This document shows positions 8,579 through 55,000 of a stretch of DNA of 64,000 nucleotides, piece by piece. The notes under the pieces are model-generated. The model was given only the letters and a program-made list of their open reading frames with translations, made no database searches and was not told where the DNA came from. The translations under genes and the position numbers were made by a program. The number at the start of each line of letters is the position of its first letter. The stretch's first letter is position 1. The stretch comes from Lytechinus pictus (Eukaryota), in NCBI RefSeq assembly GCF_037042905.1, contig NC_087257.1, positions 13,764,001-13,828,000 on the forward strand. Reading direction: 5' to 3'.

Positions 8579-11511
8579 AAGTTGTTGGGAAAAGGGTAGT
8601 TAAAAGAAAAGATAAGGAAGATGATATGATTGTGCTTTGCTGGGGGATAGTCTTTCCTTACTGTTGCTGATATCATATCAGTGTATATTTTTTTTAAGCG
8701 GCGCCTTTTCTTTTCTTTTCTTTCCTTTATTTTTTCAAGCAGCGCCTTTTCTTTCTTTTACTTTTTTTTTTGAGCGGCGCCTTCGGCGCCGCTCAAATAT
8801 TAGGGGGGGGGGGGGGGCGCGCCCCCTGCGCCACCCCCTGGATCCGCCACTGTATGTATTCCTACATACCATTTATTTAATAGGTAATTCTTCGTATCCT
8901 GAAACCATGCCATGAGCTTGTAAGACGTAGCAAACAGTAATGCCAGTACATCATATTCCAAGTAGACCAAAAGCATGTAGCTTGTGCATTATTTAAATGT
9001 TGAATTAATACTCTTTTACTTGGTTCCAATAAAATAAACATAAGAATTATCATTGGTAAGCCGGTCGTCGCCTCCACAGAGCATCACTGCGTTCTTTACC
9101 TCTACGGACGTAATTGTGGCTAAAACCCGTCGCAGATTCGACCGCAGATTCGACGCTTGCGTTAGCAAGGCTGCTTCGATAATATTAACGCACGAACCGC
9201 ATATATTACGTCTGCGTTGAGTTTGCGAAAAAAAATTAAACATTCCATGATACAAATAGTGATTTCAGTTAGTAATGTTATAAGCTACGTAAGTCATTGC
9301 TTCTGATTGGCTCAGAGCAAATCAATATGTGGAAGTCACTTACTAAATGGCTTCATGAAACGCTCCCGAGAATACCAAAATCAATATCGCCAAGAATTTT
9401 TCAATTTGATCATCAAATTATCGATCATGATAATATCAGAAAATTTGATCAGGTGCTCATTCTGTTTCATGTTTCTGTATCTCTGACTCTCACTCCTTCC
9501 TCCCCCTCCGTCTCTTCTTCATCTAACCCCTCTCTTCCTCTATCCGTCTTTCTGTCTCTCTCTCTCCTCCCCATTCTCTCTCTCCCCGTCTCACATTCTC
9601 CGCATGTGCCTACTTCCCCTCCCCCTTTCTATCTCCCCGATATGCTCTCACTCATGTTTACCTCCAGTAATTGATGGGACCAATATATAGGTCTACCATG
9701 ATTGCCTTCTATTCATCACAACTCCTCGATTCAATTATCTGATTATATCAACCATTCCCATTATAATGTTGACATTTGGAGCAGATTGTCTTTGGCAGAA
9801 AATTCCCGATGTTTTGGGAGATACATTTTACTCTCACTGACTAAAGGCAAGTTGGGGGTGTCCTAATCAAATTTTGAAAAACACCTTACCATGCTTACTG
9901 AAATATACAAAAATAAAATAAAAATGAAAAAAAGGTATAAGAAAAAAAAAATAATTTCATCAAAGAGACTGATACGACTCACTCCTAAACATAAAGCAAT
10001 AAATGACCCATAAGCCATAATTATACATTTCAGTAAATATAGACCTACAACACTGTAGAGACATAAGGTGTCAATTTAACACCAGCTCGGGAATACACGA
10101 AAGAAGTGTTGAAACAGCACCAGTTTGGCTTTGAGCTAACACCAGATATAGGCATGTATACAACCTGTGTTAAAATTGCATTGAATTGATTCTAAATTGG
10201 TGCTGATTCAAAACTTCTATGGCATGTCTGGGGTTTCCTTCATTTGCATTATTCCCGCCATTTTTTTTAACCAAACTGAGATAAAGGTCATAACATACTG
10301 CAATTTTGTAACCCTTAATAAATAACTAATTTTGGACTGAAAAAAAAAACGAAGAAGAAAAGTAAACATTGCTGCATTTATTGATTTGTATATCATCAAA
10401 CGCTAAATTACGTGGCACTGGAACTGCTGAATGCAAATAATAGACATGGTTAGAAAGAAAATGAAAAAATAAGTATGAGGGAAAGAAAGGAATGATTGAC
10501 AAAAATGAGGAAAAGGGAGAGAGACACAAAAAAGAGGCGCAAAAAATTATAAAAATGGTCAGATGGTATGATAAATTTTTCATTAATCTAAACTCAGAAA
10601 AAAGTAGCAACATATCTTCATAAATTATGTCCTGTAATCATTATTAATATTATTTCAAAGCAGGTGCAATAGACCGAGGAGCTTCAAACTGTGTTTGAGG
10701 TTCCTTGATTGGACATGACAATTGTGATCAATAGTGGCAAAATGAAATTAAAGCCAATAAATCAGGTCATTATTATTATCTTGATAAACTTCGGCAAATG
10801 TAAATACATGTAAGACGTGTACTACGGATTGAAAAGAAATCAAGCAAATACGTAGACAGAGGAAGAGCGGAAAGAGAGAAAGAGAGGGTGAGAGAGAGAG
10901 AGAGGGAGAGAGCAGAGAGGGATGACAAAATGACCACAATGCATGAAGGGGCATCTGAAATGATTTGTCAATGTCAGTACGTAGAACTACCTCATACATT
11001 AATCATCCCATGCCTTAACTAAGTCATGAAGGGTGTGATGAGGATCGAAGGGGTTACTTTATTCTTTTTCAACGATGCTGCCTCGTGACGCAAAACAGAG
11101 TGCATGCTAACGCAGCAAGGAAAAATTAGAGAACACGGAATTTCGGGTATCACCATTTTCACATCTCACTTAGATGAGTGCAGACGATGTGAAACGGGCG
11201 CCGAATTCGTGTGTGCATTCCACGGTCACGATTGCTGTGTGTAAGCCTACAGGTGTGTGTCGGGTTTCGGGGTAGCGAGGAAGGAGGAGAAAGCGACGAA
11301 TTTGCGAATGTTTGATTTACTTAGGGTAGCATGTTGAGGTCTGTTTACAAAGCACACGCTGAATTTCACGCGTGTAAGCAAGAATATTAAACCACTCTGG
11401 ACATACCCAGATAGCGGAAAGAAGCAGTTGCATATTTTATCCCACAAGGCTGCAGGGAAGCATGCGAGGATAACAGGATACGTTTTATTGTCTTTTGTAT
11501 GTAAATGCAAC

Positions 11512-12023
11512 ATGGACGGCCATGGCGACCATGAAGTGGACATGCCAAACGGAGACGCGACCACGCCGCCAGCTCAGGGGGAGGACAACGGTCAAGCAGC
11601 GGCTGAAGGTGGACTCAATAACCTACCACCAGCTCAAACGGGTCTCGCCTACTACCTCTCCTTCTTCACCGGAAATGTGAAGCCCCTCAGTGACTGGGCC
11701 TATGACAAACCGATACCTGTTCGGTTCCCGATAGCTTGCACTAGAGCCTTAGGACAGCCCCTTTTCGTGAACAACCCGTTCAGCGGACTCCTGATCCTGG
11801 TCGGACTGTTTGTGCAGAGTCCCTGGCGGACTATCTGCGGACTCTTGGCCATGTTGTCGGCCCAGACTACGGGTCTAGTCCTGCATCTAGATCGCGATGG
11901 CTTGGACAACGGAGCGTTCTCGTTTAACGGTCTCTTAGTTGGATATGTGTTGGCATCAAGCTCTGCTGCGGGGGATTGGTATGGGTACCTGGTTTTCCCC
12001 GTGGCCATCTGTGGTATGTTTAG
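11512..12023 (+). CDS. SLC14A: Urea transporter coding exon 1
   Basis: ATG in context CAACATGG at 11512; translation MDGHGDHEVD...FVNNPFSG...PVAICGMF; donor AG|GTAAGC at 12023/12024. Confidence 0.93.
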
Positions 12024-15000
12024 GTAAGCATAATTTTCGAGTTTATTGAATATGTATGCCTGATAAAGCTACAATATTGAGGATTTATGATTAAGATTGA
12101 CATATCAGCTTATCTCTGGAATCTGAAATGCATGGATTTGAAATAAATCCTTATATACAAACATATATAATATATATAAATATTGAATGAGATTTTTAAG
12201 AATAACACTTTAAGATTCAAATTAAACCCAAAATTCAATCTTGATTTGGAACAAAAAATAAACTGCAGCAATCTAGAGCGTAAAAAATTAACCTCTTACG
12301 ATTGCAGATTTTTTTAGATTTTAATTGTGTGTGACTATGATTTCATGTTTACTTTGCATATTAATTTATTCAGAATCATGAACTTCAATTACTTGGTAAT
12401 GGCAATATTTGATTTACCTTTTGCCCACGAACAAAAAAAAAAGATTCCTAAAAAGGATTGATTGATAAAAAAATATTACAAAGGATCGTTTGAGGGCATC
12501 TCGCCCTTCTTTCCCATTCCTGTAGAAGTTACACTGTTAGAAAATTTCTACTTAAAAAACCCCAAAAATTCCTGCAGCAGAGTTTCGAGAATAGCTGTAA
12601 TCTTACTGCACTGTGTGATCTTACCTGCAATTGTGTAACATTATAGTAAATTTGTATTTGGTGCATGTAACCTTACAAATTTATTGTAATAAAACTGTTT
12701 CCCCATTTTTAAAAACAGACCGGTTCTTTAAAATATTAAAAAATCTTTCCTGTTATAAAAAATTACAGAATGATTTGATTATTTCTTTCTGTAAAATCGG
12801 CTTTTTAATTCTTCTTCTGTACAATCTCCTGTTTTTCTAACAGGAGATTGTGTATACCATATGCATTTTTTGGCAATTTCACAGGTCTTGTAAAGGAGAC
12901 TGAAAATTACTTAGCTATATGCAAAATCATAAACCATAATCAATAATAATCGTACGGGAACTTCTATTACACTGTTTCCCTGGTTTTCTTTCCCCTTCCT
13001 TTCGAGGCCTCCATCAATTTCAAGCTCTAAGCTTAAGATGGAGGTCTCCCACATTTCAAAATGTATTATGTCGACATAGTATATATATTTTATCTGCCAT
13101 GTGTTTCAGTAATTGAAAAAGAAATAAATTTATCAGGTATGATTATATTTCAATTAGAATGTTAGAATGTATGTATGCATACATTATTCATTATGTCATT
13201 TGCTTACTTATATGTTATGCTAAAAAAAATGATAACACTTGTATATACATTTGTAATTGGGATATGGAAATAAATAAATCAAATCAATCAAACTAACAAT
13301 CATAAAACACAGATGACATATCATAAAAAGTTGATCTGTACGAAATGGACTTGATTAATAATCAAACAGTCAATTGCGATTAGCCTACCATTTGTGATAA
13401 AAGAAAAAAATATGTGCCCCAAAATGTAAATAATGGAAATACACAAATGCGAATGGAAAATTTAAAGTACGCGACAAAAAGAATGCCTCTTAAACTTACA
13501 CCACGATGTTGTATTGTGTTACATGTATATTGTTGTATTCAGTAATTTGATAAAAAATTAAATAGTAGAAATTCTTCCAACAAGCGTATTTTAGTTTTGA
13601 TAACCCCGCCAGAGAGCTGACCTATAGTACTGAATTTGAAGAGAAAATGTAGATTTATTCAGCTTTAAAACTAGACACGTGGTTTGATGTGTTTATTCAT
13701 CGCGTTAAAAGCAGGTGCAGAGTCGGGTGCGTGAAAACGACATCTTCCGCGCTCAGAGTAGATTGATGAACAGTAATTCATTCTTAATTTGTTTTTATCC
13801 TCTCGATATAATTGACGTATTTGTGTGTCTCGGGATGTTGCCTGGGGGTAAACAAGTCTGAAACAATAAAGCCGATCTCCTTAACATGAACGGTAGAATT
13901 GCAAATAAAAGGAGACGAGCCAGAATGATATTACGGGGATAACTCGGAGCGGAAATAAGACTTGATAAGATAGATGGAGAGAGATAAATGAATAGAAAGA
14001 GAGGGAGAGGGGTTGGGGGGGGGGGGAGAGGGGTGAGAGAAGTAGGGGGTGGGGGAGGCGATACTGTTCAACTTGAATTATTAGAAACCCAAACGTGAAT
14101 CCGAGATTCGAAACACGAAAAATTTACCATGATTTCACAGACACACAGACACGCTCACCCTCAAAAACACACTCACACCCATCACACACATGGACACCCT
14201 CACGCACACACACTCTTGCCAACCATTACACGCAATAAAGAGAATATGTGTTCATGAGCGTTGGGGTTTGTGCGTATGTGTGAGAGACATCAAACATGGT
14301 TAAAAAGCGATAGAAAGAGAGAGAGAGAGAGAGAACAGAAGGGGGGGGGGGAGAAAGAGCAGGAGAGAATTTATGTGAGAAAAAGTGAAATGGAAATAGT
14401 CAGATATGAAAAAGGCATTTCTGAGATAAAGACGATATGGATCTCGGTAATACTAATGATAAAATTACCATTATGACTGGAATCAATTAGACACTCCACA
14501 GAATAAAGAGAAAAGAGAATTGGGAATAGAATAGGCTGCATCGGAACTAAGAATTACCCGATTTTCATCTTTTGCTCCATTCATCGATTTCCAATTTTAT
14601 TTTACAAAGGTCTATGTGACAAAAATCGTAACGGGGACGAAGCTTTTAAATGATACACCAGACCATTTTTATCACGTGATCAGCAATCTTCATTAAAATA
14701 CCTGGCTCCCGTTGCATGAAAGTTACTATTGTATGGTAACTACCATGGTAACGATGCTCAACAGTCAATCAAATTCGAGGATTCCATGATAGTTACAATT
14801 TGATGGCAAAGTTACCATAATGGTTACTTTCATGCAAAGGGCACTGATCGTAAATTACGATTTAAGAATAGCTAATATCATAAACAGATTGATAGTACAT
14901 TGTATGATGAAATTCCAATGTGGTATAATTTTTACAGTGAAATAAAATAGAAGCGAATATGATAATTTTCATATTGAAATTCCCCCCACGAATCCAGCCG

Positions 15001-17808: not shown

Positions 17809-17865
<57 letters not shown>

Positions 17866-17989
17866 CCAAAGGGTAGATAGCTCTGGGGAACCTTGATTTA
17901 AGCTACGCCTACCATTGTTCTCTTCATCCATTTCTTTACAATATTTACAAATAAAAAGAGTTGCCAAAGCTGTTGTACATGTATAACTT

Positions 17990-18038
<49 letters not shown>

Positions 18039-27000: not shown

Positions 27001-30000
27001 TGTGACGAAAGGATATTTGGAAAAAGAAGCATGGGGCCAAGATGAAGACTATATATATATATATATATATTTATATCCCTCTTATGAATATTCATGAGCA
27101 TTCTAGATAAACGATTGGTCAATACGCGATCATGTGACAAAGTATAATTCAACAGAAAAGCATATCGCTGCAAGTTTTCTTCTAGCTCCGTATATTTTTC
27201 GATATACTTTCATGGGGAGAACTGCGCATGCTCATGCTCGATATGTTCCCTAAAAGTTGAACCGCGCATGCTCCCTGACCCGATATCCGCAAAAATAAAT
27301 AAAATAAAATTAGATACAAGTTCTTGCTCAAATTACTTACCGACAATCTGAAAAAACAGTGTGGAATCGGGTCTAGATCATCATGTAGACAATTTAATTC
27401 CATGACGGCCCTCCATACAGGATTATTCAAATAATACCGAACAAGGTGAGTCAGGATCTGACTGAATTAGCCTGCGCGTTTACAATTTGATGGCAACTGC
27501 AGCGGCGCAGCGCAGCGGACCTCTCATTAACTGCAGTCGGCATGGTCGGGTAGAAGCCGCGCGCAGCCTACCTATAGGAACTGGTTAGCATTAGCTCGAC
27601 AGGCCTTTATTGTAGGACTAGGTCTAGGGATATAAAACAAATATATCAGGCTTTTCCTCCGAAAGCATAGTGGGAATTATTAATCCTCGGTTGGACTGGC
27701 AATAATAACTATTTTTCCTCGGGGCTTCGCCCCTCGGAGAAAATAGTTATTGCCAGTCCAACCTCGGATAAATAATTCCCACTATACTTTCTCAAAGCCT
27801 GATATATTTGTATAATAAATATACAGCTCCATGCCCAATGCTTTATTATTATTATTTTTTTTAACTATTTTTTTTTAAATTTACCCTTACCATATCCACA
27901 ACATGGCTTCTTGTTTTCTCCATTTACAGTACAATACTGAACAGCGCCCTCTCTGTTCTACTTTCTAACTGGGGTGTCCCGTCATTCAACCTGGCGTTCA
28001 ACGTCGTCGCTGTCTCTTTCATAGCAGCCACCGGTCCTCTAAATCCCCACTTTCCCCAGCATGGTGGGGGTCCCAACCCGATCCCTTGGGGAGAGGAAGC
28101 ACTGGACTGGCTCCAGGTTAGTATAAGTTATGGCTTCTGTGTAACACTTCGGGAACTGAAAAAAATACAAATAATTTAAATTGATTGCTCGTGGGAGTAG
28201 AAATGTGTGTGTGTGGGTGGATGTAAGGAAGGTGTGTACGTTTGAGTTTGCTTGGGTAGGCTTACAGGAAAAAGGTGATTTCTGTGGGTAGGAAAAAAAA
28301 TGTGTTACGGGGTGTGAGGGTAGGGAGTGGGTGTGTGTGTGCGAATGAGTGATTAGTTAGTGTGCGTGTGCGTTTTGGGTATTATCCAATTGTGATTTCA
28401 CATTGATGAAATGCGTATGAGGGTGTGTGTGTAAGAGAGAGATTGCGTGTGTGTGTGTGGGTGGGTGGAGTGCAAGAACCAAATCATGCATTAAAACCCC
28501 AATCCCTCTACTCAAAAATTTTCCTGAAGTGATTTCATCTTGGTTTTTACGAATGTGGTCATGCGTATTGCGTGTGAGATGGTGATTAAAGAGTGTATGC
28601 TGTGGGTTTTGGTTGAATTGCACAAACCAAAGATTTTTCCGATTTTATTTCACTTTTATTTGTTGTATATGAGGTGTGTGAACAGAGAGTTTGGGATACA
28701 TTGCATGAACCAAATTATATATTAAATCCCCGTTCCCCTATGAAATATTATACATGTAATAAATGTAACTTAATTTTGATTTTTGAACAAGGCATTTGAG
28801 GGGGTATGTGTGTGTATGTGGGGGGGGGGGCGGGTGAATAAATTAGTGTGATGGATTGACAGTGTGTTTGGTGGGTGTTTGGTTTATTGCACAAACCAAA
28901 TGATACATTCAAACCCTCAATTCTTCTATTGAAATATTATTACGATGTGATTTAACATTGATTATTGATGATGAAGGGTGTGTGTGTGTGTGAGTGTGTG
29001 AGGGATGTTGCATTGGTGTGGGAATGGTTAGCGTGCGTGGTTGGTTTTTGATGGATAGCAAAAACCAAACATTTCATTAAAATCAATGTTTTGTGTTGAA
29101 ATATTATAACGATGCGATTTCACTTTAATTACGATAAATGTATATGAGGGTGTGTGTATGAGGATGTGCGTGTTTGTGGGATAGTGATTGTGCGAGGTGG
29201 TTTCAGGATAGATTGCACAAAGTAAATCATACTCACATTATAGCTCAATTCCCTCTGCTGAAAGATTATCCAGTTGTGATTTCAGTTTGATTATCGATGA
29301 AAATTGCTTATTTTAAGTAACGTACCCGAGGGAAATCAGTAATACCGGTACGGTATCAGCACGATCTTTAATCTAGTCTTTTGCAGCTAGCTGTCATAGC
29401 CGTTTTTAGGTAGGAAGAGGAAAGGGCGGGTTGGGTAATGAAATGCATGGGGCATAATATATTGTTTTAAATTTTGCATTGGAATGCAAATTATGAAATA
29501 ATGCAATTACTTCAGAGAATGCAAGCATTATTCATCGTGTTTTAAAACTTGTCAATTTCTTTGATTCTCTCCTTTCTCCCCACAACCATACCATTTTGTT
29601 CTCTCCTCCCCCTCTCTCCACTTCTCTGCTCCTTCTTCATATTAAGTTCTTTTCTCACCCCTTCCCCCATTTCCCTCCCTTTCTTTTCTCTCTCTCTCTC
29701 CATCTCATCACTCTTCCCATTTTATTGCACAGGTACTAGCAAGCATTCCACGAGGTATAGCCCAATGCTATGGCAGTGACAGCCTCATTACGGGTTGTTT
29801 GATGAGTATTGGTATGCTTATCTGCTCTCCTATTGTTTTCAGTCATTGCCTGCTAGGTTCTACGCTCGGAGCTCTGACAGGTAACTATTCGTTAAACATC
29901 TTGTACTCAGGGGCGGCGACAAAGTTAAGAGCGGGTGGGGGGGGGGGGGACTGCCCCCTCTGATCGTCAAGTGGTGAAAAACAAAAGAAAATATGTTTTA

Positions 30001-30495
30001 AAAGAAGAAGGAAAGTGAAAAAGAAAGAAACACCGCAAAAGTGTTTATAGGACAGATCTGGGCCGTGTAGCTCTCAATTTAAAAAAGTTTGATTTCACAA
30101 TAAAACAAATCCTGGTGCCGCCCCGAGTGTATATTACTACAAATTAGTTTCACATGCATTTCTTAAGAAAAGGCACAAGTGCTCCATTAATATCTAACAT
30201 GTCTAATGTCAGACTTGTATTTATACGTTTCCTGAACTTTATTACCACATTCGTAAACGATCATATCACTGACATCATCGTGCATGTCATGATCATGTTA
30301 AATTTTGAAGAAAAAAAATGGTATCATAAAAAAAAAAAATCCAACTTGAATTGTTTTTTTTTTAGAGTGAGATTTCAGTCTAATGAAGAGGGGGGGGGGG
30401 GGGAGAACATTCCACATGTTGGTTGAGAAAAACCCCAAATATATAATAAAAGAAACACCCGTAAAGAGATTCATCTAATTGGTAGAACTCAAATA

Positions 30496-30541
<46 letters not shown>

Positions 30542-33500
30542 GTGTGAAGTTATACATGTACAACAGCTTTGGCAACTCTTTTATTTAAATATGTTGTGAA
30601 AGAAATGTCATTGTTCAAAACCTACCTTCACCCGACAAAGGAAATTATAATTGGTATAGTGTCGAAAATCTGTCTATCTGACGGTCAATCGGATCGGGGT
30701 CGCCCTAGCCACTAACCCGTCTCTTTGGTCTAGTGGTTAAGGCACCGGCGTTCAAAGCTGGGGGCCTGGGTTCGATTCCAGGCAGAGACATTTTGTCGGC
30801 ATCACCAATTTTTCCAAAGGGTAGATAGCTCTGGGGAACCNNNNNNNNNNNNNNNNNNNNNNNNNNNNNNNNNNNNNNNNNNNNNNNNNNNNNNNNNNNN
30901 NNNNNNNNNNNNNNNNNNNNNNNNNNNNNNNNNNNNNNNNNNNNNNNNNNNNNNNNNNNNNNNNNNNNNNTTTTGATAAATACATGTACGTGTTTGCAGC
31001 CTAAGTGAGTTCAATTCAATGAGTACAAGTCTACTTCAGTTGACAGGTTATAGTAGTGAGAAAGACAAAGTGGATCCCTCAGCTTTTCACTGAGATACCA
31101 TCAACACTACTGCCACACCAAAGTAACCGCCTCTAAACCTACCAGTGATTTTCCATTCGAAACAACGTAATAGCTTTAATCGGACTCGAGTAAGTTTCGT
31201 TGGTATGACTAGAGCATAGTTTGCTGTTCCACTTATCAACACAATGTTACCATGGTTACTGATTAACATGAAGTGGTGCATTTTGAGATTCATTGTGAAT
31301 TTCCTCATTTTCCTCAAAAGTGTTTCGTCGAGTATCTGCCTTTTCAGATTTCCTCGATGATAATCTCTCAAAATATTAACCATCAAGTACTAGATAAAAG
31401 TACGCGTATAAATAAATTAGTTGACATGTGGATAGATCGATGAGAAAAAAGAAGAAATAGATTTGAAAATGTAGACAAATTCATAAATATGGAGATGAAG
31501 AGAGAAAAGGTGAGGAAGAGGGGGGGGGGGGGAGGGGGGAGAGAGAGAAAGGGGGGGGGGGGGGAGTGTGTGTGAAAAGCAAATACAGTTACAAGAAATG
31601 CAAAGTTTTTGAATGGCTATATGCCACCTTTACTGTCCTTATAAAAAAGGTAATACTTTGTCTTCTAGTTTAGGTGAAGTTAAGATTTCACCAAATTGGA
31701 CTATTTCTCGAAATACAAATTATGTCCAAGGGTTTTTAATTCACAAAACCTGGTCCCCCTAAAAAATTGGTTTGTCCGTATGAATTCATAATGTCTTCCT
31801 AACATACCAGCTTGTCCAACGACAACATGTGAGGTGAACTCATTATGAGCAGAGTATGACCCCATTTCCTCCCAAAGTCGAATACCAAATGACAGGATTC
31901 GATTGCATACTCCAAGTTAACACAATGTTACCTATGGCAACAACATGTAGTCAAACATGTAGAAGAAATTGAGAAAAGGCTCTCCCTACCAATTTCCAAC
32001 GATTTATTTCCCCAAGTCTTCTTTTTTACAATCAAGTATTCGTGGCGTGCCATACATATCCTGGCTAATCCAATTTCACGCATTAGATACCGATTCGAAT
32101 GCATGCCTAGGTTTTAATATTCTATTCCTTCAGGCCTTTCTGTATATTTCGAGGCAATATCAGAAGGTGGGAATAAAAAGGAGGATAAAACGAAAGTCAT
32201 TTTTACATATAATTTAATGCAAGAGTTATTATTGTCCGTGAATGATTACATGTAAAACGAAAATCACGGAAGTGTACAGAACTTAGAAATGTAATATGTG
32301 AGATGAAGGGGTCATCGATATGACGTCTACAACAGCTTTGGCATGTATCTCTGGTTTGGGTGACTGAAGAGCATTTCACAAAGAATTTTTTCGGTGATTT
32401 TCACTCATTGCCCTCGGCAAATCGGATGCAAGGATCTCCACCTGTCAGTCAAGATCCCTGACAAAAAAATGTCCATTAAACAAACTAATCATACATGTAC
32501 ATTAAATAAAAAAATGTTAATGGAATTTGTTTCCTGTTTGATAAAAGGGATTAGTTTTTTTGTCTCGCCTGCATAGCAGAGCGAGACTATAGGCGCCGCT
32601 TTTCCGACGGCGGGGGCGGCGGCGTCGTCAACATTGAAATCTTAACCAAGGTTAAGTTTTTGAAATGTCATCTTAACTTAACAAGTGGAACGCCTCTGGC
32701 AGTCTCGCCTGCATTACGCGATTTAATATAGCAGCAGTGCTAACTTTGAAAACTACTATTAAATAATCATTCACAAAAACACCATTCATATAATGACATA
32801 ATACCACGTTCATTGACCATAAATGACATTTGAACGGTGACTTAAGACTTGTCAACTACACCCATGTCCACATTTCATTCACTCTATCCATAAACTTTCA
32901 AAGTTATGATGGCAATTCAACAATTACCCCAACATGGCCTAAGTTTATTGACCTTAACTGACCTTTGACCTTGGTTTTGTGACCTGAAACTCACAGGGGA
33001 TGTTCAGTGATACTTGATTACTCTTATATCCCAAGTTGTATGAACTAGATCCATAAACTGTCAGAGTTAGGATGGTAATTCAACAAATACCCCTAACACG
33101 GCCAAAGTTCATTGACCTTTAATGACCTTTGACCATGGTCATGTGACCTGAAACTCGTACAGGATGCTCAGTGATACTTGATTACTCTTATGTCCAAGTT
33201 TTATGAACTAGATCCATAAACTTTCAGAGTTAGGATGGTAATTTAACAAATATCCCGAACACGGCCAAAGTTCATTGACCTTAAATGACCATTGACCATG
33301 GTCATGTGACCTGAAACTCGCACAGGATATTCAGTGGTACTTGATTAACCTAATGTCCAAGTTTCATGAACTAGATCCATAAATTTTCAAAGTTATGATG
33401 GTAATTCAACAAATACCCCCAACTTGGCCAAAGTTCATTGACCCTAAATGACATTTGACCTTGGTCACGTGACCTGAAACTCAGGCAGGATGTTCACTAA

Positions 33501-36500
33501 TACTTGATTAACCTTATGCCCAAGTTTCATGAACTAGGTCCATATACTTTCTAAGTTATGATGTCATTTCAAAAACTTAACCTTCGGTTAAGATTTTGAA
33601 AATAATTCTCCCAACATGGTCTAAGTTCATTGACCCTAAATGACCTTTGACCTTGGTCATGTGACCTGAAACTCAGGCAGGATATTCAGTAATACTTGAT
33701 TAAGCTTATGTCCAAGTTTCATGAACTAGGTCTATATACTTTCTAAGTTATGATGTAATTTCAAAAACTTAACCTTAGGTTAAGATTTGATGTTGACGCC
33801 GCCGCCGCCGCCGCCGCCGTCGCCGTCGGAAAAGCGGCGCCTATAGTCTCGCTCTGCTATGCAGGCGAGACAAAAAGTAAATGGACCTAGTTCATGTAAT
33901 GAAACTTTTAGACATAAGAATAGTAATGTATCACTGTAGATCCTGCCTAAGATTCAGATCACATCAACAAGGTCAAAGGTCACTTAGGGTCAACGAACTT
34001 TGACCATGTTTGGGGTATTTGTGAAATTGTCATCATAACTTTAAAGTTTATGTATCTAGTTCGTGAAAGTTTGACGTAAGAGTAACCATGTATCCCTGAA
34101 TATCTTGTGTGTGTTTCAGGTCACATGATCAAGATCAAAGGTCATTTAAGATCAATGAACTTTGGCTGTGTTGTGGGTATTTGTTGAATTGGCATCATGA
34201 CTTTAAGTTTATGGATCTACTCATGTAGTTCATGAAACAAAGACATAAGGGTTATCAAGTATTTTTTTTACACGTCTTAAGTCACATGGTTATGGTCAAA
34301 GGTCATGTTGGGTCAATGGACATAGTATTTTAGTATCATATCAGTGTTTTCTTTTGTGAATAATTATTCAATAGCTGCTTTCAATGTCAGCACTGTTGCT
34401 ACATTGAATCGCGTAATGCAGGCGAGACTGCCAGAGGCGTTCCACTTGTTTTTATTACAATGAGAGTCTGTAAATCTGTAATTGTTTGTTTTTAAAGGGA
34501 AAATGTACTACGAACTTACAAAATATATTTTTTAGGAATGCCAGAAGTCAGGGTCTAAAAGCAGGTCGTTAGAATACGCTAATGAGCCTATACTATTCGA
34601 AAGTTTTCACAGCTGTAGACCACCACAAAAGGTTAATGATAATGATTAACTATTGTTAGCCTACAGTTTGACATCTGCTGATATGTACAGTAAAGCAAAT
34701 ATAGATATACATGTATTTAACTGATTGCCTTAAAGAGAATTGAAAAGGGTAGCCGAAACTCCTACACACCGGCACTATATTATTGCCCCCCGCGGACTGA
34801 TATAGACCCTGCATATGAATTTGAAATGGCTGTGCTGGATGCAATTTGATAAACCACGGATTAAAATACATGGTGAGAGCCTCACGAAAGCAAATCGTAT
34901 CAGCTTGCTTCAGTGACAAATCCCGCACTTACTGCACTTTCGACAATGAAATTTGATTAAGTAGAAGCACGGATGATGATCCGTAGAAACCTCATTAGAT
35001 TACAAAAATTATCCATAGTTCATTCTTCTTATTTTACCCTTCTTTCACCTTCAAGGTCAAACCGAAAGGTATGGTATATTTGAATGAATCACAATCGATT
35101 GGTCAGAGGGCCAGAAGGGATAAATTGGTTTTGACGCGCCCGCCTTGAAGGTTTAAGACGAACCGAAAACAAGATTAGAGAGCTGTTTGAAGAGTAACGG
35201 AGACGACATTAACACCAATTCCGGGATGGAATCCGCCCAACAAAATGGCGGCTTTCTTGATGGTTATAGGATAGAGACCACCCGAGGGATTATAGTTCCC
35301 CAAAATACAGTATTTCTTTATGAGTATTGGCATTGTTGTGTGACTATTTGCGCACTGTTTATTCAACTCGGAATCCAATAAGAATAAGATGTGCTATATG
35401 GAGAAAAGTGGAAAGTGGAAAAGGAAAACAGAGAATGGGTGTGCAAGTATCTGTGTTTGTGTGTGAGAGATAAAGAGAGAAAAGGAGAGAACATGCATGA
35501 GTTTGGTGGATGTGTGAAAAGAAGGGTGCATAAATATGAGAGAGACACAGAGGGACAGAAAGAGAGAGGGAGAAGAGAGAGAGATAAAAGGGTGGACAAA
35601 GAGGGTTTGCACTGGATTTGAATACTAAAAAAACAAAACGAAAAAGAAAATAGAACAAGATAACGATGGTTATTTTTTTTTCTAATATGAAAAACACAAC
35701 CCAATATTATTTTCTTTTTTATTTTGAAATATATTTCATTTGTTTTATCATATAAACTTATTCCTAGGTCTTGCTCTTGCAGCACCTCCAGCAGAAATCT
35801 ACAACGGTAGCTGGGGATACAATTCGGCTCTCACTTGTGGGGCCGTAGGGGGCGTCTTCTATGTATTGAATTGGTCGTCACATCTAATGGCACTTATTTC
35901 TGGTAAGTGAAAATTGGTGATATTATTGATAGGAGAATACCAATCAACCAAAGAAATAGAAGGAGATACAGACGAACAAAAACATTCAAAACAGCAAATT
36001 AAATTGGGGATTCGTATTTGTCATTTTTTTTTCAACTCACTCCGTATAAGAAAATGTATTATGCAAGTTATAATTTGGTAGGGTAGTTTACGTAAGTGTG
36101 TTCACGAATTCCGTCTTCGAAACTTATGTTTACAAGATAAACTGCATATGAACTGAACCAAAAAAAAATAGGTTAGGACATTGAATAAAATAGTGCTATT
36201 AGTGACGTATCCAGGTAGGGGCATATCCGGTCAGTGCCCCCCCCCTTTTTTGAGAGACACAAAATACATAGTTTTAGAGGAATACGTCTTGCATGCGCAA
36301 GTGAGGACCTTTTGTTTTGTTTGTCATATTTTTCCTTGAACAAAATACCTCGGTTTTGTGAAGAAAATCCTTTTCTTTTTGCTTGTCAAATTTTTCCTGT
36401 AAAATATGCCCCCCCCCCCTCTGTAGGAAAAAGATAAAAGATATAATTCACGTAAAATCAATGTTAACTTTTAAACCGTTAAGGCTAGAATCCGACATTT

Positions 36501-36794
36501 ATTAGTTTTTCCTTTAGTGACTATAAGTCTTCTTTCTGTTTTCTTTTTTAAACAGCTATTTTCGCTGCGTTGGTGAGAGGGGCGATGGCCCGATTTTTCG
36601 CCGCGGCCCAAGTACCCGTGGTAGCATTTCCATTCTGCATTGTAGCTGCTCTCTTCCTATTGGTGGACAGTAACAGCAAACAGCTTCTGCGCGTGCCCGG
36701 TGACCGCATGACCTACCCGGAAGAACATCGTAAACTTTTTAAGTCGACCACGGTTGGAGTCACAAACGTCCAACCCGACCAAGACCCGACGTAA
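11512..36794 (+). CDS. SLC14A: Urea transporter (SLC14/UT family), 5 coding exons, 406 aa: join(11512..12023,27930..28116,29733..29880,35768..35902,36556..36794)
   Basis: All introns are GT..AG with compatible phases (2,0,1,1); the spliced length is 1221 nt = 406 aa + TAA. UT hallmarks: GQPLFVNNPFSG, G.FSFNGLLVG, NWGVPSFNLAFN, GIAQCYGSD, IYNGSWGYNSAL, VPVVAFPFC, MTYPEEH. Confidence 0.95.
12532..12843. mobile_element. CACTG-terminus MITE; an inverted end of the same family occupies 1-66
   Basis: CACTGTTAGAAAA...TTTTCTAACAG; 12532-12602 resembles the reverse complement of 1-67. Confidence 0.65.
12960..13292 (+). mobile_element. Probable LINE 3' tail
   Basis: Hairpin GGCCTCCATC..GATGGAGGTC, AT-rich UTR, ending AATAAATAAATCAAATCAATCAAA. 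Confidence 0.45.
14703..14846. mobile_element. Short palindromic MITE
   Basis: CCCGTTGCATGAAAGTTAC ... GTTACTTTCATGCAAAGGG imperfect TIRs. Confidence 0.55.
17866..17996 (+). mobile_element. 5'-truncated copy of the same (TA)n-associated element
   Basis: CCAAAGGGTAGATAGCTCTGGGGAACC...GTTGCCAAAGCTGTTGTACATGTATAACTTCACAC with (TA)n on both sides. Confidence 0.7.
20179..21646. mobile_element. hAT-type non-autonomous element (1468 bp) containing a hairpin-repeat array
   Basis: TIR CATGGGTGTCGATC / GATCGACACCCATG; perfect 8-bp TSD CTTGTGGA (20171-20178, 21647-21654); an internal CAGTGGCGTACC at ~20317 suggests a nested element. Confidence 0.9.
22142..22929. mobile_element. PIF/Harbinger-type MITE
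   Basis: TIR GGCTGCGTTTAT / ATAAACGCACCC; 3-bp TSD TTA; subterminal AATCATGATT palindromic repeats at both ends. Confidence 0.8.
22941..23366. mobile_element. Degenerate Harbinger-like MITE
   Basis: AAGGCGACCGCAC..CACCTTGCGA at left; GTAAGGTGTGTGATGGCCTTT at right. Confidence 0.5.
24669..25100 (-). mobile_element. LINE (CR1/L2-type) 3' fragment
   Basis: The minus strand reads KCKINRFRNSPITCFVHLL (ORF2 C-terminus-like), followed by a 3' UTR ending AATAAA-(TTGAA)n. Confidence 0.6.
27631..27817. mobile_element. Fold-back element (~185 bp) with a central GCTTCGC hairpin
   Basis: Arms ACAAATATATCAGGCTTT..TAGTGGGAATTAT..GGTTGGACTGGCAATAA..CTATTTT mirrored about GGGGC-TTC-GCCCC (27721-27733). Confidence 0.8.
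27930..28116 (+). CDS. SLC14A: Urea transporter coding exon 2
   Basis: Acceptor ttgttttctccatttacag; (S)TILNSALSVLLSNWGVPSFNLAFNVVAVSFIAATGPLNPHFP...LDWLQ; donor CAG|GTTAGT. Confidence 0.93.
29733..29880 (+). CDS. SLC14A: Urea transporter coding exon 3
   Basis: Long pyrimidine tract then cacag; VLASIPRGIAQCYGSDSLITGCLMSIGMLICSPIVFSHCLLGSTLGALT; donor CAG|GTAACT. Confidence 0.93.
30541..30840 (+). mobile_element. (TA)n-associated element carrying the TCA tRNA-like gene; runs into the assembly gap
   Basis: Starts right after a (TA)n tract. 30815-30840 matches 17866-17892 directly, and 30541-30607 matches 17929-17996 as an inverted repeat. Confidence 0.7.
30719..30790 (+). tRNA. tRNA-like gene, anticodon TCA (opal/UGA-reading), short variable arm; TE-borne, possibly a pseudo-tRNA
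   Basis: 72-nt cloverleaf: acceptor GTCTCTT/CAGAGAC, D stem GTCT/AGGC, anticodon stem CCGGC/GCTGG with loop GT-TCA-AA, T arm CTGGG-TTCGATT-CCAGG. A box TGGTCTAGTGG, B box GGTTCGATTCC, TTTT directly after discriminator A. Two stem mismatches and atypical G32. Confidence 0.6.
30841..30970. other. Assembly gap (130 N)
   Basis: Run of N. Confidence 1.
32560..34450 (+). mobile_element. Helentron-associated (HINE/DINE-1-like) non-autonomous element, host copy
   Basis: 5' TTTT-GTCTCGCCTGC with a nearby partial inverted repeat, a (GGC)n tract, internal tandem repeats, and 3' GCAGGCGAGAC followed by a short stem-loop and TT; no TSD. Confidence 0.75.
32681..33873 (-). mobile_element. Second complete copy of the same HINE family, inserted inverted in the host copy; ~163-bp internal tandem repeats
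   Basis: Its ends are reverse complements of the host ends (32681-32722 vs 34408-34449; 33770-33873 vs 32560-32665). GACCTGAAACTC recurs at 32981, 33145, 33308, 33471 and 33663. Confidence 0.8.
35768..35902 (+). CDS. SLC14A: Urea transporter coding exon 4
   Basis: Acceptor ttcctag; (G)LALAAPPAEIYNGSWGYNSALTCGAVGGVFYVLNWSSHLMALIS; donor G|GTAAGT. Confidence 0.93.
36556..36794 (+). CDS. SLC14A: Urea transporter coding exon 5 (terminal)
   Basis: Acceptor ttctttttaaacag; (A)IFAALVRGAMARFFAAAQVPVVAFPFCIVAALFLLV...MTYPEEHRK...DPT*. Confidence 0.93.
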
Positions 36795-37730: not shown

Positions 37731-37841
37731 GGCTTCAGTCACACGCACGAAACGAACTCCAGACCGATCAAAGTTATTACGTTATTTTGAATGGAATATT
37801 ATCTGTCGGTTCGGAGTCGGTTTCGTTGGTGTGACTATGCC
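37731..37841. mobile_element. Palindromic MITE
   Basis: GGCTTCAGTCACAC..ACGAAAC..ACTCC..ACCGA mirrored by TCGGT..GGAGT..GTTTCGT..GTGTGACTATGCC. Confidence 0.6.
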
Positions 37842-52072: not shown

Positions 52073-52099
52073 TAAAAAACTGACTGTTATCTAGTGAAA

Positions 52100-55000
52100 A
52101 TGGATGGCATGCGACCACCAGAAGCCTTTTCTCTACAGGGCAACATCACAGATAACTGGAAGAGGTGGAAACAGCGTTTTGAGCTGTATTTAACAGCTAG
52201 TGGACTTGACAAAAAGGACTCAAAAGTACAAACAGCGACACTGCTTCACATTATTGGTGAAGAGGCGTTAGAAATTTACAACACATTTTCTTTCGAGCAG
52301 GTAATTTCATCGTCAGGACAACCTGTAGCACCGACATTAAAAGACTTGCTGGAGAAATTCACTGTACATTTTGAGCCACAGTCCAACGTGACTTTTGAGA
52401 GACATGTATTCAACACAAGATTTCAACACGAAAACGAGTCATTTGACCAGTTCGTCACAGACTTGAAGAAAAAAGCTAAATCATGTGAGTTTGAGCATCT
52501 TCGAGACAGTCTGACAAAAGACAGAATTGTTGTTGGAATTCGTGATGATGGTACCAGAGCACGACTACTCAGAGAAAAAGACTTGTCTTTGGAGAAAGCA
52601 ATAGACATTTGCAAGGCAACTGAGATAACGTCACAACATATTGCAGAGCTGAAGCCCAAACAGAACATTCATGCAATGCAGGCGACATCGATGAATAGGA
52701 AGACATGCCCGAAGTGTGGAAATAAGCATCCACCCAGAAAATGCCCTGCATATGGCAAAGAATGCCATACCTGCAAAAAGAAAAACCATTTCAGCTCCAT
52801 GTGTAGAGATCAGGATCGAGATAATGACAGAGACCGATTATCAAGGAAGGTTCCATTTGGAGGACAAACTCGCAACAAAAAGGGTCATCGCCCCAGCAAA
52901 AGAGGGATCCATGACATCAAACAGGACAGTGAATACAGTGATGCCGACAGTGAAGAGTTCCACGTCGACGCCATCAATGGAGTCCAGCAGAAAGAGGAGA
53001 AATCGAAAAAAGAATGGTATGTCAATCTCACATTTCTTTCTGACAAAAACAGGCATAAAGAAAAAGCAACAACCAACAGTGCTCAATTCAAAATTGATAC
53101 AGGTGCTCAATGCAATATACTGGCTGCTAAGGCTTATAAAAAGCTAGGGATGCCAAAATTTGGCAAGTCAAAAGCAAGATTGATGTCATATACAGAACAC
53201 GTTGAAAAATCACATTTGGGAAAATGTACCCTAACATGTGTGAGGAAGAACAAATTCCATAACATTGAGTTTGAGGTGATTGATAGAGATGCCCAATCCA
53301 TACTTGGACTTGAGTCATCTGAATTACTAGGTTTTGTAAAGAGGGCAGATTCAATCAAAGATGATAATTTGGCAAATCAATACACAGACGTGTTTGAAGG
53401 CCTTGGATGTATGGGGGAACCACAGCATTTAGATGTTGATAAATCAATCAGTCCAACAATCCATCCTCCAAGGAAAGTCCCAGTAGCAATAAAACAAGGT
53501 GTGAAAAATGAGCTCAATAGAATGGAAGAAATGGGTGTGATAGTAAAGCAAACAGAACCAACACAGTGGGTAAGTTCGATGGTCACAGTAGCAAAGAAAG
53601 GGAAAAATAAGGTAAGAATATGCCTAGACCCTAGGGACTTAAATAAAGCAATAAAAAGACCACACTACCCGATGAAGACAATTGATGACATTACTGATAA
53701 TCTAGCCGGCGCACAGATCTTTAGTACATTAGATGCTAATTGCGGTTTCTGGCAGATTCCTCTTGATGACGAGAGTTCAAAACTTCTCACATTTAATACG
53801 CCCTACGGCAGATATAGATTTCTTAGATTACCATTTGGAATCAACTCTGCTAGTGAGATATTTCAGAGAATTATGACCGATATGTTTAGCGACATAGAAG
53901 GTGTAGAGGTTCTGGTAGATGACATTCTAATATATGGCCCCTCAGAAAGTGTCCATGATCAAAGGTTGAAGCAAGTACTAGAAAGGTGCAGAAAAAAATG
54001 CATCAAACTCAACCCAGACAAATGCCATATCAGGCAAACACAGGTCACATACATGGGACACATAGTATCTACAGAAGGACTAAAACCAGACCCAAAGAAA
54101 ATAGAGGCAATCACAAAGATGCCTACCCCACAGAGTAAAAAGGGTGTTCAACAATTCCTAGGAATGGTAAACTACTTAGGCAAGTTTATCCCTAACTTGA
54201 CAGAGAAATCAGCACCAATTAGAGTACTACTAGAAAAAGATGTGGCATGGCACTGGGATGACAAAAAAGAAGCAAGTTTCAAAGCGCTTAAAGAAGCGGT
54301 AACAAATGCTCCAGTGTTAAAGTACTACGATGTAAGTAAACCAGTCAAGTTAAGCGTAGATGCATCGCAAGCAGGCACGGGCGCAGTCCTACTACAAAAT
54401 GGACATCCAGTGGCATATGCGTCAAAAGCATTTACCGATGCTCAGACACGATATGCCCAAATTGAGAAGGAGCTAGCCGCGATTGTATTTGGTTGTAAGA
54501 AATTTCACCAATATATATTTGGACGCACAGTGGATGTAGAAACGGATCATAAACCACTTGAAACGATATTCAAGAAACCACTGCATGCTTCCCCACCGCG
54601 ACTCCAAAAAATGCTCCTCAATCTGCAAAACTATGATCTGCGCGTAACATATGAAAAGGGCGTCAACCTTTTCATATCCGACTGCCTCAGTAGAAATTTC
54701 CTAGCCAATCAAAGTGATGATGTTGATGTGGAAGAGATACCCATATGCATCATTGACAAACTTCCCATCGCAGACGAACGAATGAAAGAAATAAAAGATG
54801 AAACTAAAAAGGATGAAATGCTACAAAAGCTCCGTAAAGCAATCCTAACTGGATGGCCAAATGAAAAAAGGGAAGTCAGTGAAGAAATTCGACAATATTG
54901 GGAGTATAGAGAACTACTTACAGTAGAAGATGAATTAATATGCAAAGATGCGCGAGTGATAATACCAAAATCACTTAGAAAAAAGATGATCGGAAAAGTA

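Follow-up and report, generated by a model that had tools for sequence, protein, structure and literature searches.

Penelope-like retroelements of the Naiad type show 5′ truncation, an inverted 5′-truncated copy at the 5′ end and microsatellite targets, and they are without hammerhead ribozymes (PMC8557442). In rust fungi, all the predictions of tRNA-Sup-CTA derive from Helenus elements (PMC10886601). In the literature we found neither a tRNA-bearing non-autonomous partner of Penelope-like elements nor a description of the tRNA-bearing sea-urchin family considered here, one copy of which lies at 30541-30840 of the 64,000-nt stretch of Lytechinus pictus DNA that we analysed (the window). We consider this copy to be probably a dead, 5′-truncated fold-back copy of a non-autonomous, Penelope-style sea-urchin retroelement, in which the tRNA is a kept module and not a decoder of UGA.

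A tRNA-shaped gene at 30719-30790

ARAGORN called a single tRNA in the 64-kb window, a 72-nt tRNA-like gene at 30719-30790 on the plus strand, with the anticodon tca at position 34. The general tRNA family of Rfam (RF00005) matched this gene over model positions 1-71 with 41.7 bits, above the gathering score of 29, and the gene is thus a member of that family. The isolated 72-nt RNA folded with -30.6 kcal/mol (z = -3.1), a value equalled by 0 of 200 shuffled sequences. One 20-nt piece of it is present a single time in the window, against a chance expectation of 0.01.

Both parts of the internal Pol III promoter were found on the plus strand: the A box at 30726-30736 (TGGTCTAGTGG, tRNA positions 8-18) and the B box at 30769-30779 (GGTTCGATTCC), which is undamaged in the copy at 30541-30840. 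The anticodon TCA (30752-30754, plus strand), called by ARAGORN and read in the sequence, is set between G32-T33 and A37-A38, so that the whole loop reads G32 T33 T34 C35 A36 A37 A38. The discriminator is the A at 30790; it is followed by TTTT at 30791-30794 (plus strand), a run that the family letter T at 30795 extends to six T's, and by a second run of five T's (30809-30813) 18 nt beyond TTTT. Two pairs of the cloverleaf are mismatched, T.C at 7:66 and G.A at 51:63. An earlier note on this DNA had described a 72-nt cloverleaf with A and B boxes, U33, TCA, A37 and a TTTT terminator, and had listed the same two mismatches; ARAGORN, the Rfam score and direct reading agree with it, and the mismatches are seen in the sequence. 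The presence of a tRNA-shaped gene with a stop-codon-reading anticodon is therefore confirmed.

The label tRNA-SeC that ARAGORN gave to this gene rests solely on the tca anticodon. In true tRNA-Sec the fold is 9/4, the extra arm is long, the D stem has 6 bp, position 73 is G and the length is ~87-90 nt. In the gene at 30719-30790 the acceptor/T fold is instead 7/5, the variable region has four bases and the D stem 4 bp, position 73 is A and the length is 72 nt; these features rule out tRNA-Sec, as the earlier note had held; Rfam placed the gene in its general tRNA family, and only the anticodon matches. The D and T arms presumably resemble those of Glu/Gly-type tRNAs. A single substitution separates TCA from, among others, Gly-TCC, Arg-TCG and Trp-CCA, and one contig from another species has a related loop reading TCC.

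The repeat family and its insertion into (TA)n tracts

The copy at 30541-30840 is located within an intron of a urea-transporter gene, in sense orientation, and is set in a (TA)n microsatellite. Precisely, the tract at 30494-30540 (pure run 30503-30538) directly adjoins the left insertion end and is the presumed target. The first part of the copy, 30541-30606, is on the minus strand and is an inverted copy of the 3′-terminal ~66 nt of the family, a fold-back made at insertion: in blastn, 30541-30607 matched 17995-17929 on opposite strands with 91% identity, and such opposite-strand joints at 30606/30607 were also present in the contigs of other family copies. On the plus strand, 30607-30718 is the upstream body of the family (and the left arm of the hairpin described below), which is 5′-truncated in this copy; the contigs of other copies extend leftward beyond 30607 with a different, common sequence. 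Downstream of the tRNA, 30795-30840 (plus strand) continues the right hairpin arm into a masked stretch, and its last 27 nt, 30814-30840, are 100% identical to 17866-17892 (blastn). The remaining 3′ part, if present in this copy, falls within the run of 130 N's at 30841-30970. No reading frame of the element is longer than ~46 codons. The tRNA had been placed ~180 bp inside the element; this ~180 bp is not uniform, for 30541-30606 is the inverted 3′ end, and only 30607-30718 is a true upstream part.

A second, strongly 5′-truncated family copy is at 17866-18001 (plus strand); it consists of the last ~135 nt, without the tRNA and with a (CA)n end, and is flanked by (TA)n tracts on the left (17812-17865) and on the right (18002-18031). 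(TA)n adjoins both copies of the window yet makes up 0.48% of it, as expected of an element with microsatellite targets. Truncation at the 5′ side, as in 17866-18001, and an inverted 3′ end such as that of 30541-30606 are described for Penelope-like elements (PMC8557442), and the 3′ terminus common to the two copies is ~160 nt downstream of the tRNA. Together, (TA)n targets, truncation and fold-back are the insertion signature of Penelope-like retroelements. No Penelope-like ORF was found in the 64-kb window, the sole long ORF of which is a Ty3/Gypsy-type pol, and permissive Rfam scans of the two copies to E = 10 gave hits only to the (TA)n tracts, which are artefacts, and none to a hammerhead or another ribozyme. 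The best explanation of these data is a very abundant, short, non-autonomous element that inserts into (TA)n microsatellites. Searches of metagenome, viral and prokaryote genome collections for other copies, with exact patterns leaving the anticodon loop free, with the acceptor/T-arm end and with the conserved downstream 27-mer, gave none.

The data on the family came from the contigs of four runs and three species, which are depth-weighted assemblies and not single copies or raw reads. In one DNA run we counted 3127 contig pieces of the family, which is thus highly repeated; this bears out the earlier suggestion of a module borne by a transposable element, the tRNA being part of one copy of a high-copy repeat. 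In the family majority the cloverleaf is fully paired, the A and B boxes are present and six T's come right after the discriminator; the majority tRNA sequence is identical in the contigs from the three species. It has no CCA, which points to a tRNA gene, or else a primary transcript of Pol III, as its source and not to a mature tRNA.

When compared with family letters at >98% of depth, the copy at 30541-30840 differs only at 30725 (T>G, from copy to family), 30767 (T>C), 30780 (A>C) and 30795 (G>T). The family letters restore G:C at 7:66, a C:G and a G:C in the T stem, and the six-T run. With them the canonical cloverleaf has -29.6 kcal/mol, against -18.4 for the copy, which pays 11 kcal/mol for its changes. 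The 78 nt of tRNA and terminator contain every one of the four private changes, and the remaining 156 nt of the body are free of them (p = 0.012). Three of the changes harm the tRNA itself and the fourth makes the terminator shorter, so that this copy is decaying. It had already been suspected of being degenerate, and in fact the 7:66 and 51:63 mismatches and the short T-run are private to it. G32, listed as a further defect of this copy, is present, but it is also the family letter, with no variant reaching 5%. A private mutation to TCA had been named as a possible refutation; TCA is the majority anticodon of the family, and no variant of 30752-30754 was found at 5% of depth or more in the four runs and three species. 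The anticodon is, on the other hand, no better conserved in the contigs than the other 69 positions of the tRNA.

In these contigs, which reveal only variants common to many copies and in small counts, variant sites at 5% of depth or more were 14 of 112 in the upstream part and 1 of 50 downstream; the 72 positions of the tRNA had none (p = 0.001). The tRNA is spared by the variants common among subfamilies, an observation newly made here, and its uniform conservation could partly reflect the young age of the family. We weighed whether the tRNA is a pure passenger: a single event of template switching would have captured a tRNA gene or pre-tRNA, which would be conserved only through the youth of the family and functionless for element and host. 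Penelope-like elements do retrotranspose host sequences in trans (PMC8557442), the copy at 30541-30840 decays freely, with its four private changes, and the uniformity that includes the anticodon would fit; moreover, the tRNA-less, 5′-truncated copy at 17866-18001 inserted normally, so that the tRNA is dispensable in cis for insertion. Against a passenger are the difference between the tRNA and the sequence just upstream in common variants and the sameness of the majority tRNA in three species, and we regard this origin without function as unlikely.

The hairpin predicted for the element RNA

As a single-sequence prediction, the RNA of the element body folded with -86.6 kcal/mol (z = -4.95) and 77 pairs between two arms, the minimum-energy fold pairing 30607-30718 with 30726-30839. 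With the letters of this copy, even the best fold in which the cloverleaf is retained is 28 kcal/mol less stable than the hairpin; for the family letters the hairpin has -95.2 kcal/mol, against -72.3 when the cloverleaf is kept. The minus strand gave a weaker fold (-72.9 kcal/mol, z = -2.64). The long hairpin is predicted to hide the tRNA in the element RNA, a feature also newly noted here.

Left-arm C's paired to G have a common C>T change at 7 of 22 sites, which keeps the pair as U.G, while a common, pair-breaking G>A change was found at 0 of 15 left-arm G's paired to C (p = 0.028 against C>T). Overall, 5 of the 10 common variants at paired sites would break the pair. The right arm has none of the pair-preserving C>T changes tolerated in the left arm, which is a further point against a pure passenger. 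At the DNA level the likeness of the two arms is not significant (54 of 1000 shuffles did as well, p about 0.05); for this reason we do not claim an ancient inverted duplication of the arms, and speak only of complementarity at the RNA level. Rfam did not recognise the left arm as an antisense relic of a tRNA.

The transposing RNA does not come from the promoter of the tRNA, because 112 nt upstream of the tRNA are in the copied unit and the tRNA is followed by T4/T6 and T5 runs. We propose that a longer sense RNA (plus strand), made from a promoter other than the tRNA's own, would form a rod-like hairpin. In it the acceptor, D and T arms would be paired with the upstream arm, so that neither RNase P nor RNase Z would have access to the tRNA. 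A reverse transcriptase/endonuclease, presumably of the Penelope type, would then start synthesis from the 3′ terminus, which ends in (CA)n, within a (TA)n tract. Premature termination would give the 5′-truncated copies, and strand switches the inverted piece. Masking of the tRNA in a hairpin would be a testable explanation of why a sense tRNA in a transposition intermediate survives the action of RNase P and RNase Z.

The opposite role for these enzymes has to be weighed too. RNase P and RNase Z could excise the tRNA from tandem or multimeric transcripts, so that the tRNA would be a processing signal standing in for the hammerhead of Penelope-like elements and retrozymes. A Penelope-type insertion with no ribozyme in Rfam would suit this role, and retrozyme RNAs are likewise short, highly paired and tandemly arranged (PMC7229834). 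The common 3′ terminus is, however, ~160 nt downstream of the tRNA and not at its border, the best-supported ends of the other copies (contigs) are not at 30718/30719 or 30790/30791, and the predicted hairpin would conceal the tRNA. Furthermore, the ends left by RNase P and RNase Z are not joined by RtcB, the ligase used by retrozymes. We rank a processing signal as very improbable because the ends of the element do not coincide with the borders of the tRNA.

The tRNA module and known systems

If intact copies were transcribed by Pol III, matured and charged, the tRNA might act as an opal suppressor for a partner element with an in-frame UGA. The fully paired cloverleaf of the family majority, its undamaged A and B boxes, its six-T terminator and a TCA that is fixed across three species in the contigs would all allow this. 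The sequence A36-A37-A38 is the context of i6A37-modified tRNAs reading UNN codons, with which the loop agrees, and charging by TrpRS would be compatible with A73 and G1:C72. A canonical suppressor anticodon loop has a pyrimidine at 32, U33 and a purine at 37; here U33 and A37 are present, but position 32 is G also in the family, and a purine at this position is rare in working elongator tRNAs. In addition, in so highly repeated a family an active suppressor would be harmful or costly, and the tRNA is predicted to be masked in the element-length RNA. Naiad elements with UGA-containing ORFs had been proposed as a parallel; Naiad selenoproteins, however, depend on SECIS elements and the normal Sec machinery with tRNA-Sec, and the reports of them concern clams and spiders and not echinoderms (PMC8557442). 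Predictions of suppressor tRNAs derived from transposable elements are, moreover, a known class of artefact (PMC10886601). A working UGA suppressor is not supported by these data, and we hold it to be extremely improbable.

A role in trans could also be imagined for a two-state parasite of Penelope-like elements, which would alternate between the rod hairpin that hides the tRNA in the transposing RNA and a free, Pol III-made tRNA-like RNA acting in trans; we think this distinctly unlikely. The free RNA might serve, for example, as a weak Trp-type UGA suppressor or as a cofactor of the partner's telomerase-like reverse transcriptase.

We prefer to see the tRNA as a kept module of the retroelement, one that, in our reading, successful element lineages must retain. 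It would most plausibly serve as a gene unit that binds Pol III/TFIIIC, a role that we infer, and as one arm of a structured RNA. If it does not decode UGA, the UCA anticodon can be read as a frozen accident of the tRNA that was captured.

With eukaryotic tRNA-Sec the family tRNA shares the UCA anticodon and the A36-A37-A38 loop. Helenus, Ajax and Cassandra (TRIMp3) are, like the family, non-autonomous retroelements with a captured small-RNA gene, the Pol III boxes of which are kept, and they inflate tRNA counts, including "suppressor" predictions (PMC10886601). They are, however, LTR elements that have primer-binding sites, make target-site duplications and bear the small-RNA genes in their LTRs, and most of their tRNA-like parts cannot be folded as tRNAs (PMC10886601), whereas the family has no LTRs and its majority sequence folds as a perfect cloverleaf. 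Automatic annotation of sea-urchin genomes will report the family as suppressor tRNAs, an error that its identity as a repeat module prevents.

The tRNA-derived SINEs (SINE2) are, like the family, short, non-coding and high-copy, with a tRNA-related part carrying A and B boxes; they too are copied from the 3′ end by the reverse transcriptase of a partner and often give rise to false tRNA predictions. The internal A and B boxes are common to both, but the family does not have a 5′ tRNA head without a terminator before the body. It has a complete, fully paired tRNA with the terminator directly after it and at least 112 nt of copied sequence upstream, and it differs also in its (TA)n targeting, its fold-back, its heavy 5′ truncation and the lack of a LINE-type or poly(A) tail. 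The earlier argument from an arrangement unlike that of a SINE head is weakened by the position of the tRNA 5′ end, which is not an arbitrary one within the element but the centre of a hairpin-like unit.

The metazoan retrozymes (PMC7229834) and non-autonomous Chlamys elements such as MRC1 (PMC8557442) are non-autonomous partners of Penelope-like elements and share with the family a short non-coding unit and a strongly self-paired RNA. The insertions of the family have the architecture of Penelope-like elements, with 5′ truncation and an inverted 5′-truncated copy at the 5′ end, and its microsatellite target is like that of Naiad. It differs from retrozymes and MRC1 in having no hammerhead and, in its place, a whole tRNA gene. 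If it depends on Penelope-like elements, the family would be a hammerhead-free, tRNA-bearing counterpart of the animal retrozymes, and a tractable one in which to ask how carrying a complete Pol III gene benefits a retroelement.

The tRNA-like gene and the family sequence

When ARAGORN was run on the whole 64-kb window it returned one tRNA only, at 30719-30790 (+) with anticodon tca, and the Rfam general tRNA model matched the same 72 bases end-to-end with 41.7 bits (gathering score 29). The isolated RNA of these bases was predicted to fold with -30.6 kcal/mol (z = -3.1). Read from the sequence (+ strand), the A box is at 30726-30736, the B box at 30769-30779, the anticodon loop is G32 T33 T34 C35 A36 A37 A38, the variable region has four bases and the discriminator A (30790) is followed by a TTTT run (30791-30794); two mismatches, T.C at 7:66 and G.A at 51:63, are also present. 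These are the details listed in the earlier note, and the tRNA-shaped object is confirmed as real and correctly described. A tRNA-Sec identity, already excluded in that note, is ruled out by the 7/5 fold, the absent long extra arm and A73.

The gene is carried by a repeat copy at 30541-30840 (this copy). Contigs of four public runs (two DNA runs and two guessed RNA, three coded species) were placed on this region at 80% likeness, and the majority sequence was considered as the family sequence. The family is highly repeated, with 3127 contig pieces from one DNA run alone. Only at four positions does this copy depart from a letter that has over 98% of the family depth. Precisely, the family letter at 30725 (T in this copy, G in the family) restores G:C at 7:66, those at 30767 (T, C in the family) and 30780 (A, C in the family) restore a fully paired T stem, and that at 30795 (G, T in the family) lengthens the TTTT to six T. 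The canonical cloverleaf has an energy of -29.6 kcal/mol with the family letters vs -18.4 kcal/mol in this copy. All four private changes fall within the 78 nt of the tRNA and its terminator and none in the remaining 156 nt of the element body (p = 0.012, post-hoc test). This decay of the tRNA bears out the earlier note's suspicion that the copy may be dead: 30541-30840 is a dead repeat copy carrying a tRNA gene.

Probably by coincidence, the bases at 30767 and 30780, the two private changes of the T arm, form a pair in a shifted register; there the canonical T arm gives way to a hairpin (30764-30783) of 7 bp with 6 nt in its loop.

At the anticodon (30752-30754) variants at or above 5% of depth are absent in every run, so the family itself carries TCA in each of the three species. 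The earlier note named as refuting its reading a family anticodon that differs or drifts; neither was seen in these contigs. At 30724 one contig of run X10, from another species, continues into a related anticodon arm with loop TCC (a glycine anticodon), which may hint at the ancestral tRNA or at a sister family.

Insertion architecture and promoter

This copy sits in sense within an intron of a urea-transporter gene, whose exons (27865-28176, 29646-29960, 35728-35907 and 36552-36791, all +) were recognised by their Pfam UT match. These four exons cover profile positions 78-291, and a second Pfam UT piece, an exon-like ORF at 11428-12027 (+), covers positions 3-94; the two places may be one gene with very long introns or two neighbouring copies. 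In the same intron, within 1.7 kb around the insertion, the + strand has G runs of 13-16 at 29937-29949, 30390-30403, 31518-31530 and 31552-31565. Elsewhere, an uninterrupted 1321-codon ORF (52094-56059, +) with protease, reverse transcriptase, RNase H and integrase domains looks like the intact pol of a Ty3/Gypsy-type LTR retrotransposon.

The left end of this copy adjoins a (TA)n tract (30494-30540) and its right part runs into 130 N (30841-30970). Just right of this N run, a stretch of ~97 nt (31114-31210) has an inverted repeat 6.5 kb off, at 37737-37833 (-), with 77% identity; it is an unrelated repeat. A second copy of the family (17866-18001, +) consists of the last ~135 nt only, lacks the tRNA, ends with (CA)n and has (TA)n on both sides. 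Since (TA)n tracts are only 0.48% of the window, the location of both insertions (2/2) in such tracts is not chance.

The family 3' end is visible in the second copy, and on this basis we recognised the fragment 30541-30606 (-) as its reverse complement. The earlier note had placed the tRNA ~180 bp inside the element; these ~180 bp are not one uniform element body, 30541-30606 being an inverted 3' end and not upstream sequence. In the contigs, many 'opposite strands' joints at 30606/30607 belong to other copies, and left of 30607 the other copies continue with a different sequence common among them; therefore, the 5' truncation of this copy lies at 30607, where an inverted piece of its own tail caps it.

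The copied unit includes 112 nt or more on the upstream side of the tRNA, which is followed by the immediate T4 (T6 in the family) and, 18 nt further, by a T5 run, so the copied RNA must start upstream, from another promoter, and the tRNA's own promoter cannot make the transposing RNA. Within the element the tRNA forms an internal module in sense orientation, dispensable in cis for insertion because the second copy, truncated without it, inserted.

At sites 30644, 30645, 30699 and 30710, alternative letters reach ~90% or more of depth in run X19 (guessed RNA) vs 5-31% in X1, a DNA run of the same species; this may reflect preferential transcription of one subfamily or a difference between the individuals.

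Predicted hairpin and shared variants

The RNA of the 234-nt body (30607-30840, +) was predicted to fold into a single long rod-like hairpin (-86.6 kcal/mol, z = -4.95), in which the left arm (30613-30719) pairs with the right arm (30726-30839) through 77 pairs (37 G:C, 31 A:U and 9 G.U); the minus-strand fold is weaker (-72.9 kcal/mol, z = -2.64). In the predicted structure the left arm forms 9-bp helices against both the D arm and the T arm, and the anticodon stem-loop, as a side branch, is the sole part of the tRNA that is kept. Forcing the cloverleaf on the body RNA costs 28 kcal/mol with this copy's letters and 23 kcal/mol with the family letters (-95.2 vs -72.3), and the ensemble pairing probability is ~0 for the acceptor, D and T stems. 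The likeness of the two arms at the DNA level is not significant; hence we claim RNA-level complementarity alone, and not an ancient duplication as their origin. If this hairpin is real, it would keep RNase P and RNase Z off the tRNA in the transposition intermediate, and the cloverleaf could arise only where Pol III transcribes the tRNA by itself as a short RNA.

In depth-weighted contigs a variant is visible only if many copies have it, so these variants are subfamily differences. Sites with such shared variants are 14/112 in the upstream arm (30607-30718), 0/72 in the tRNA (p = 0.001) and 1/50 downstream. Of the 22 left-arm C's paired with G, 7 have a shared C>T change, which keeps the pair as U.G, and of the 15 left-arm G's paired with C none has a shared G>A change, which would break it (p = 0.028); at CpG sites, the pair-preserving partner is mutated and the pair-breaking one is not. 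As counter-evidence, half of the ten shared variants that fall on paired sites are transversions that would disrupt the pair. With small numbers and from contigs, these observations point the same way, suggesting that the lineages that succeeded retain the + strand pairing and hold the tRNA half more constant than pairing by itself would require. This speaks for a module needed by the element rather than a pure passenger. Conservation of the anticodon is no higher than that of other tRNA positions, and the variant pattern carries nothing specific to it.

The suppressor question and known elements

The earlier note proposed a UGA-suppressor-like tRNA or a tRNA-derived RNA module, possibly allowing read-through; a suppressor role is unsupported. 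For this copy any RNA signal would be confounded by the sense intronic position, and all the runs are contigs, blind to mature RNA. In the anticodon loop, A36-A37-A38 is the usual context of tRNAs reading UNN codons; G32, which speaks against suppression, is the family's letter. A73 with G1:C72 would be no obstacle to TrpRS, and by its majority sequence the family has a flawless tRNA gene followed by a strong terminator; together with the loop context, these points keep alive a small probability of a suppressor role, although the high copy number of the family would make an active suppressor costly and the long RNA is predicted to hide the tRNA. Also against suppression, the UGA-containing Naiads mentioned in the earlier note, which are reported in clams and spiders, rely on SECIS and the Sec machinery (PMC8557442), and 'suppressor' calls derived from repeats have a precedent in rust fungi, in which all the tRNA-Sup-CTA calls come from Helenus elements (PMC10886601).

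A literature search found no description of this tRNA-bearing family, which merits a proper genome-wide and RNA-level study. It behaves like the non-autonomous partners of Penelope-like elements; the latter, notably the Naiad clade, are described as heavily 5'-truncated, as having a 5'-truncated copy in inverted orientation at the 5' end and as inserting into (TA)n, and the Naiad clade is also without hammerhead ribozymes (PMC8557442). Permissive Rfam scans found no ribozymes in either window copy, whereas retrozymes are defined by the hammerhead (PMC7229834). The promoter boxes are like those of tRNA-derived SINEs, but the layout is unlike, as the earlier note had recognised, since the tRNA is not 5'-terminal and a terminator directly follows it. 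Helenus, Ajax and Cassandra also carry a small-RNA gene, but the family is without LTRs. We regard the family as an unusual form among the known kinds of non-autonomous retroelement.
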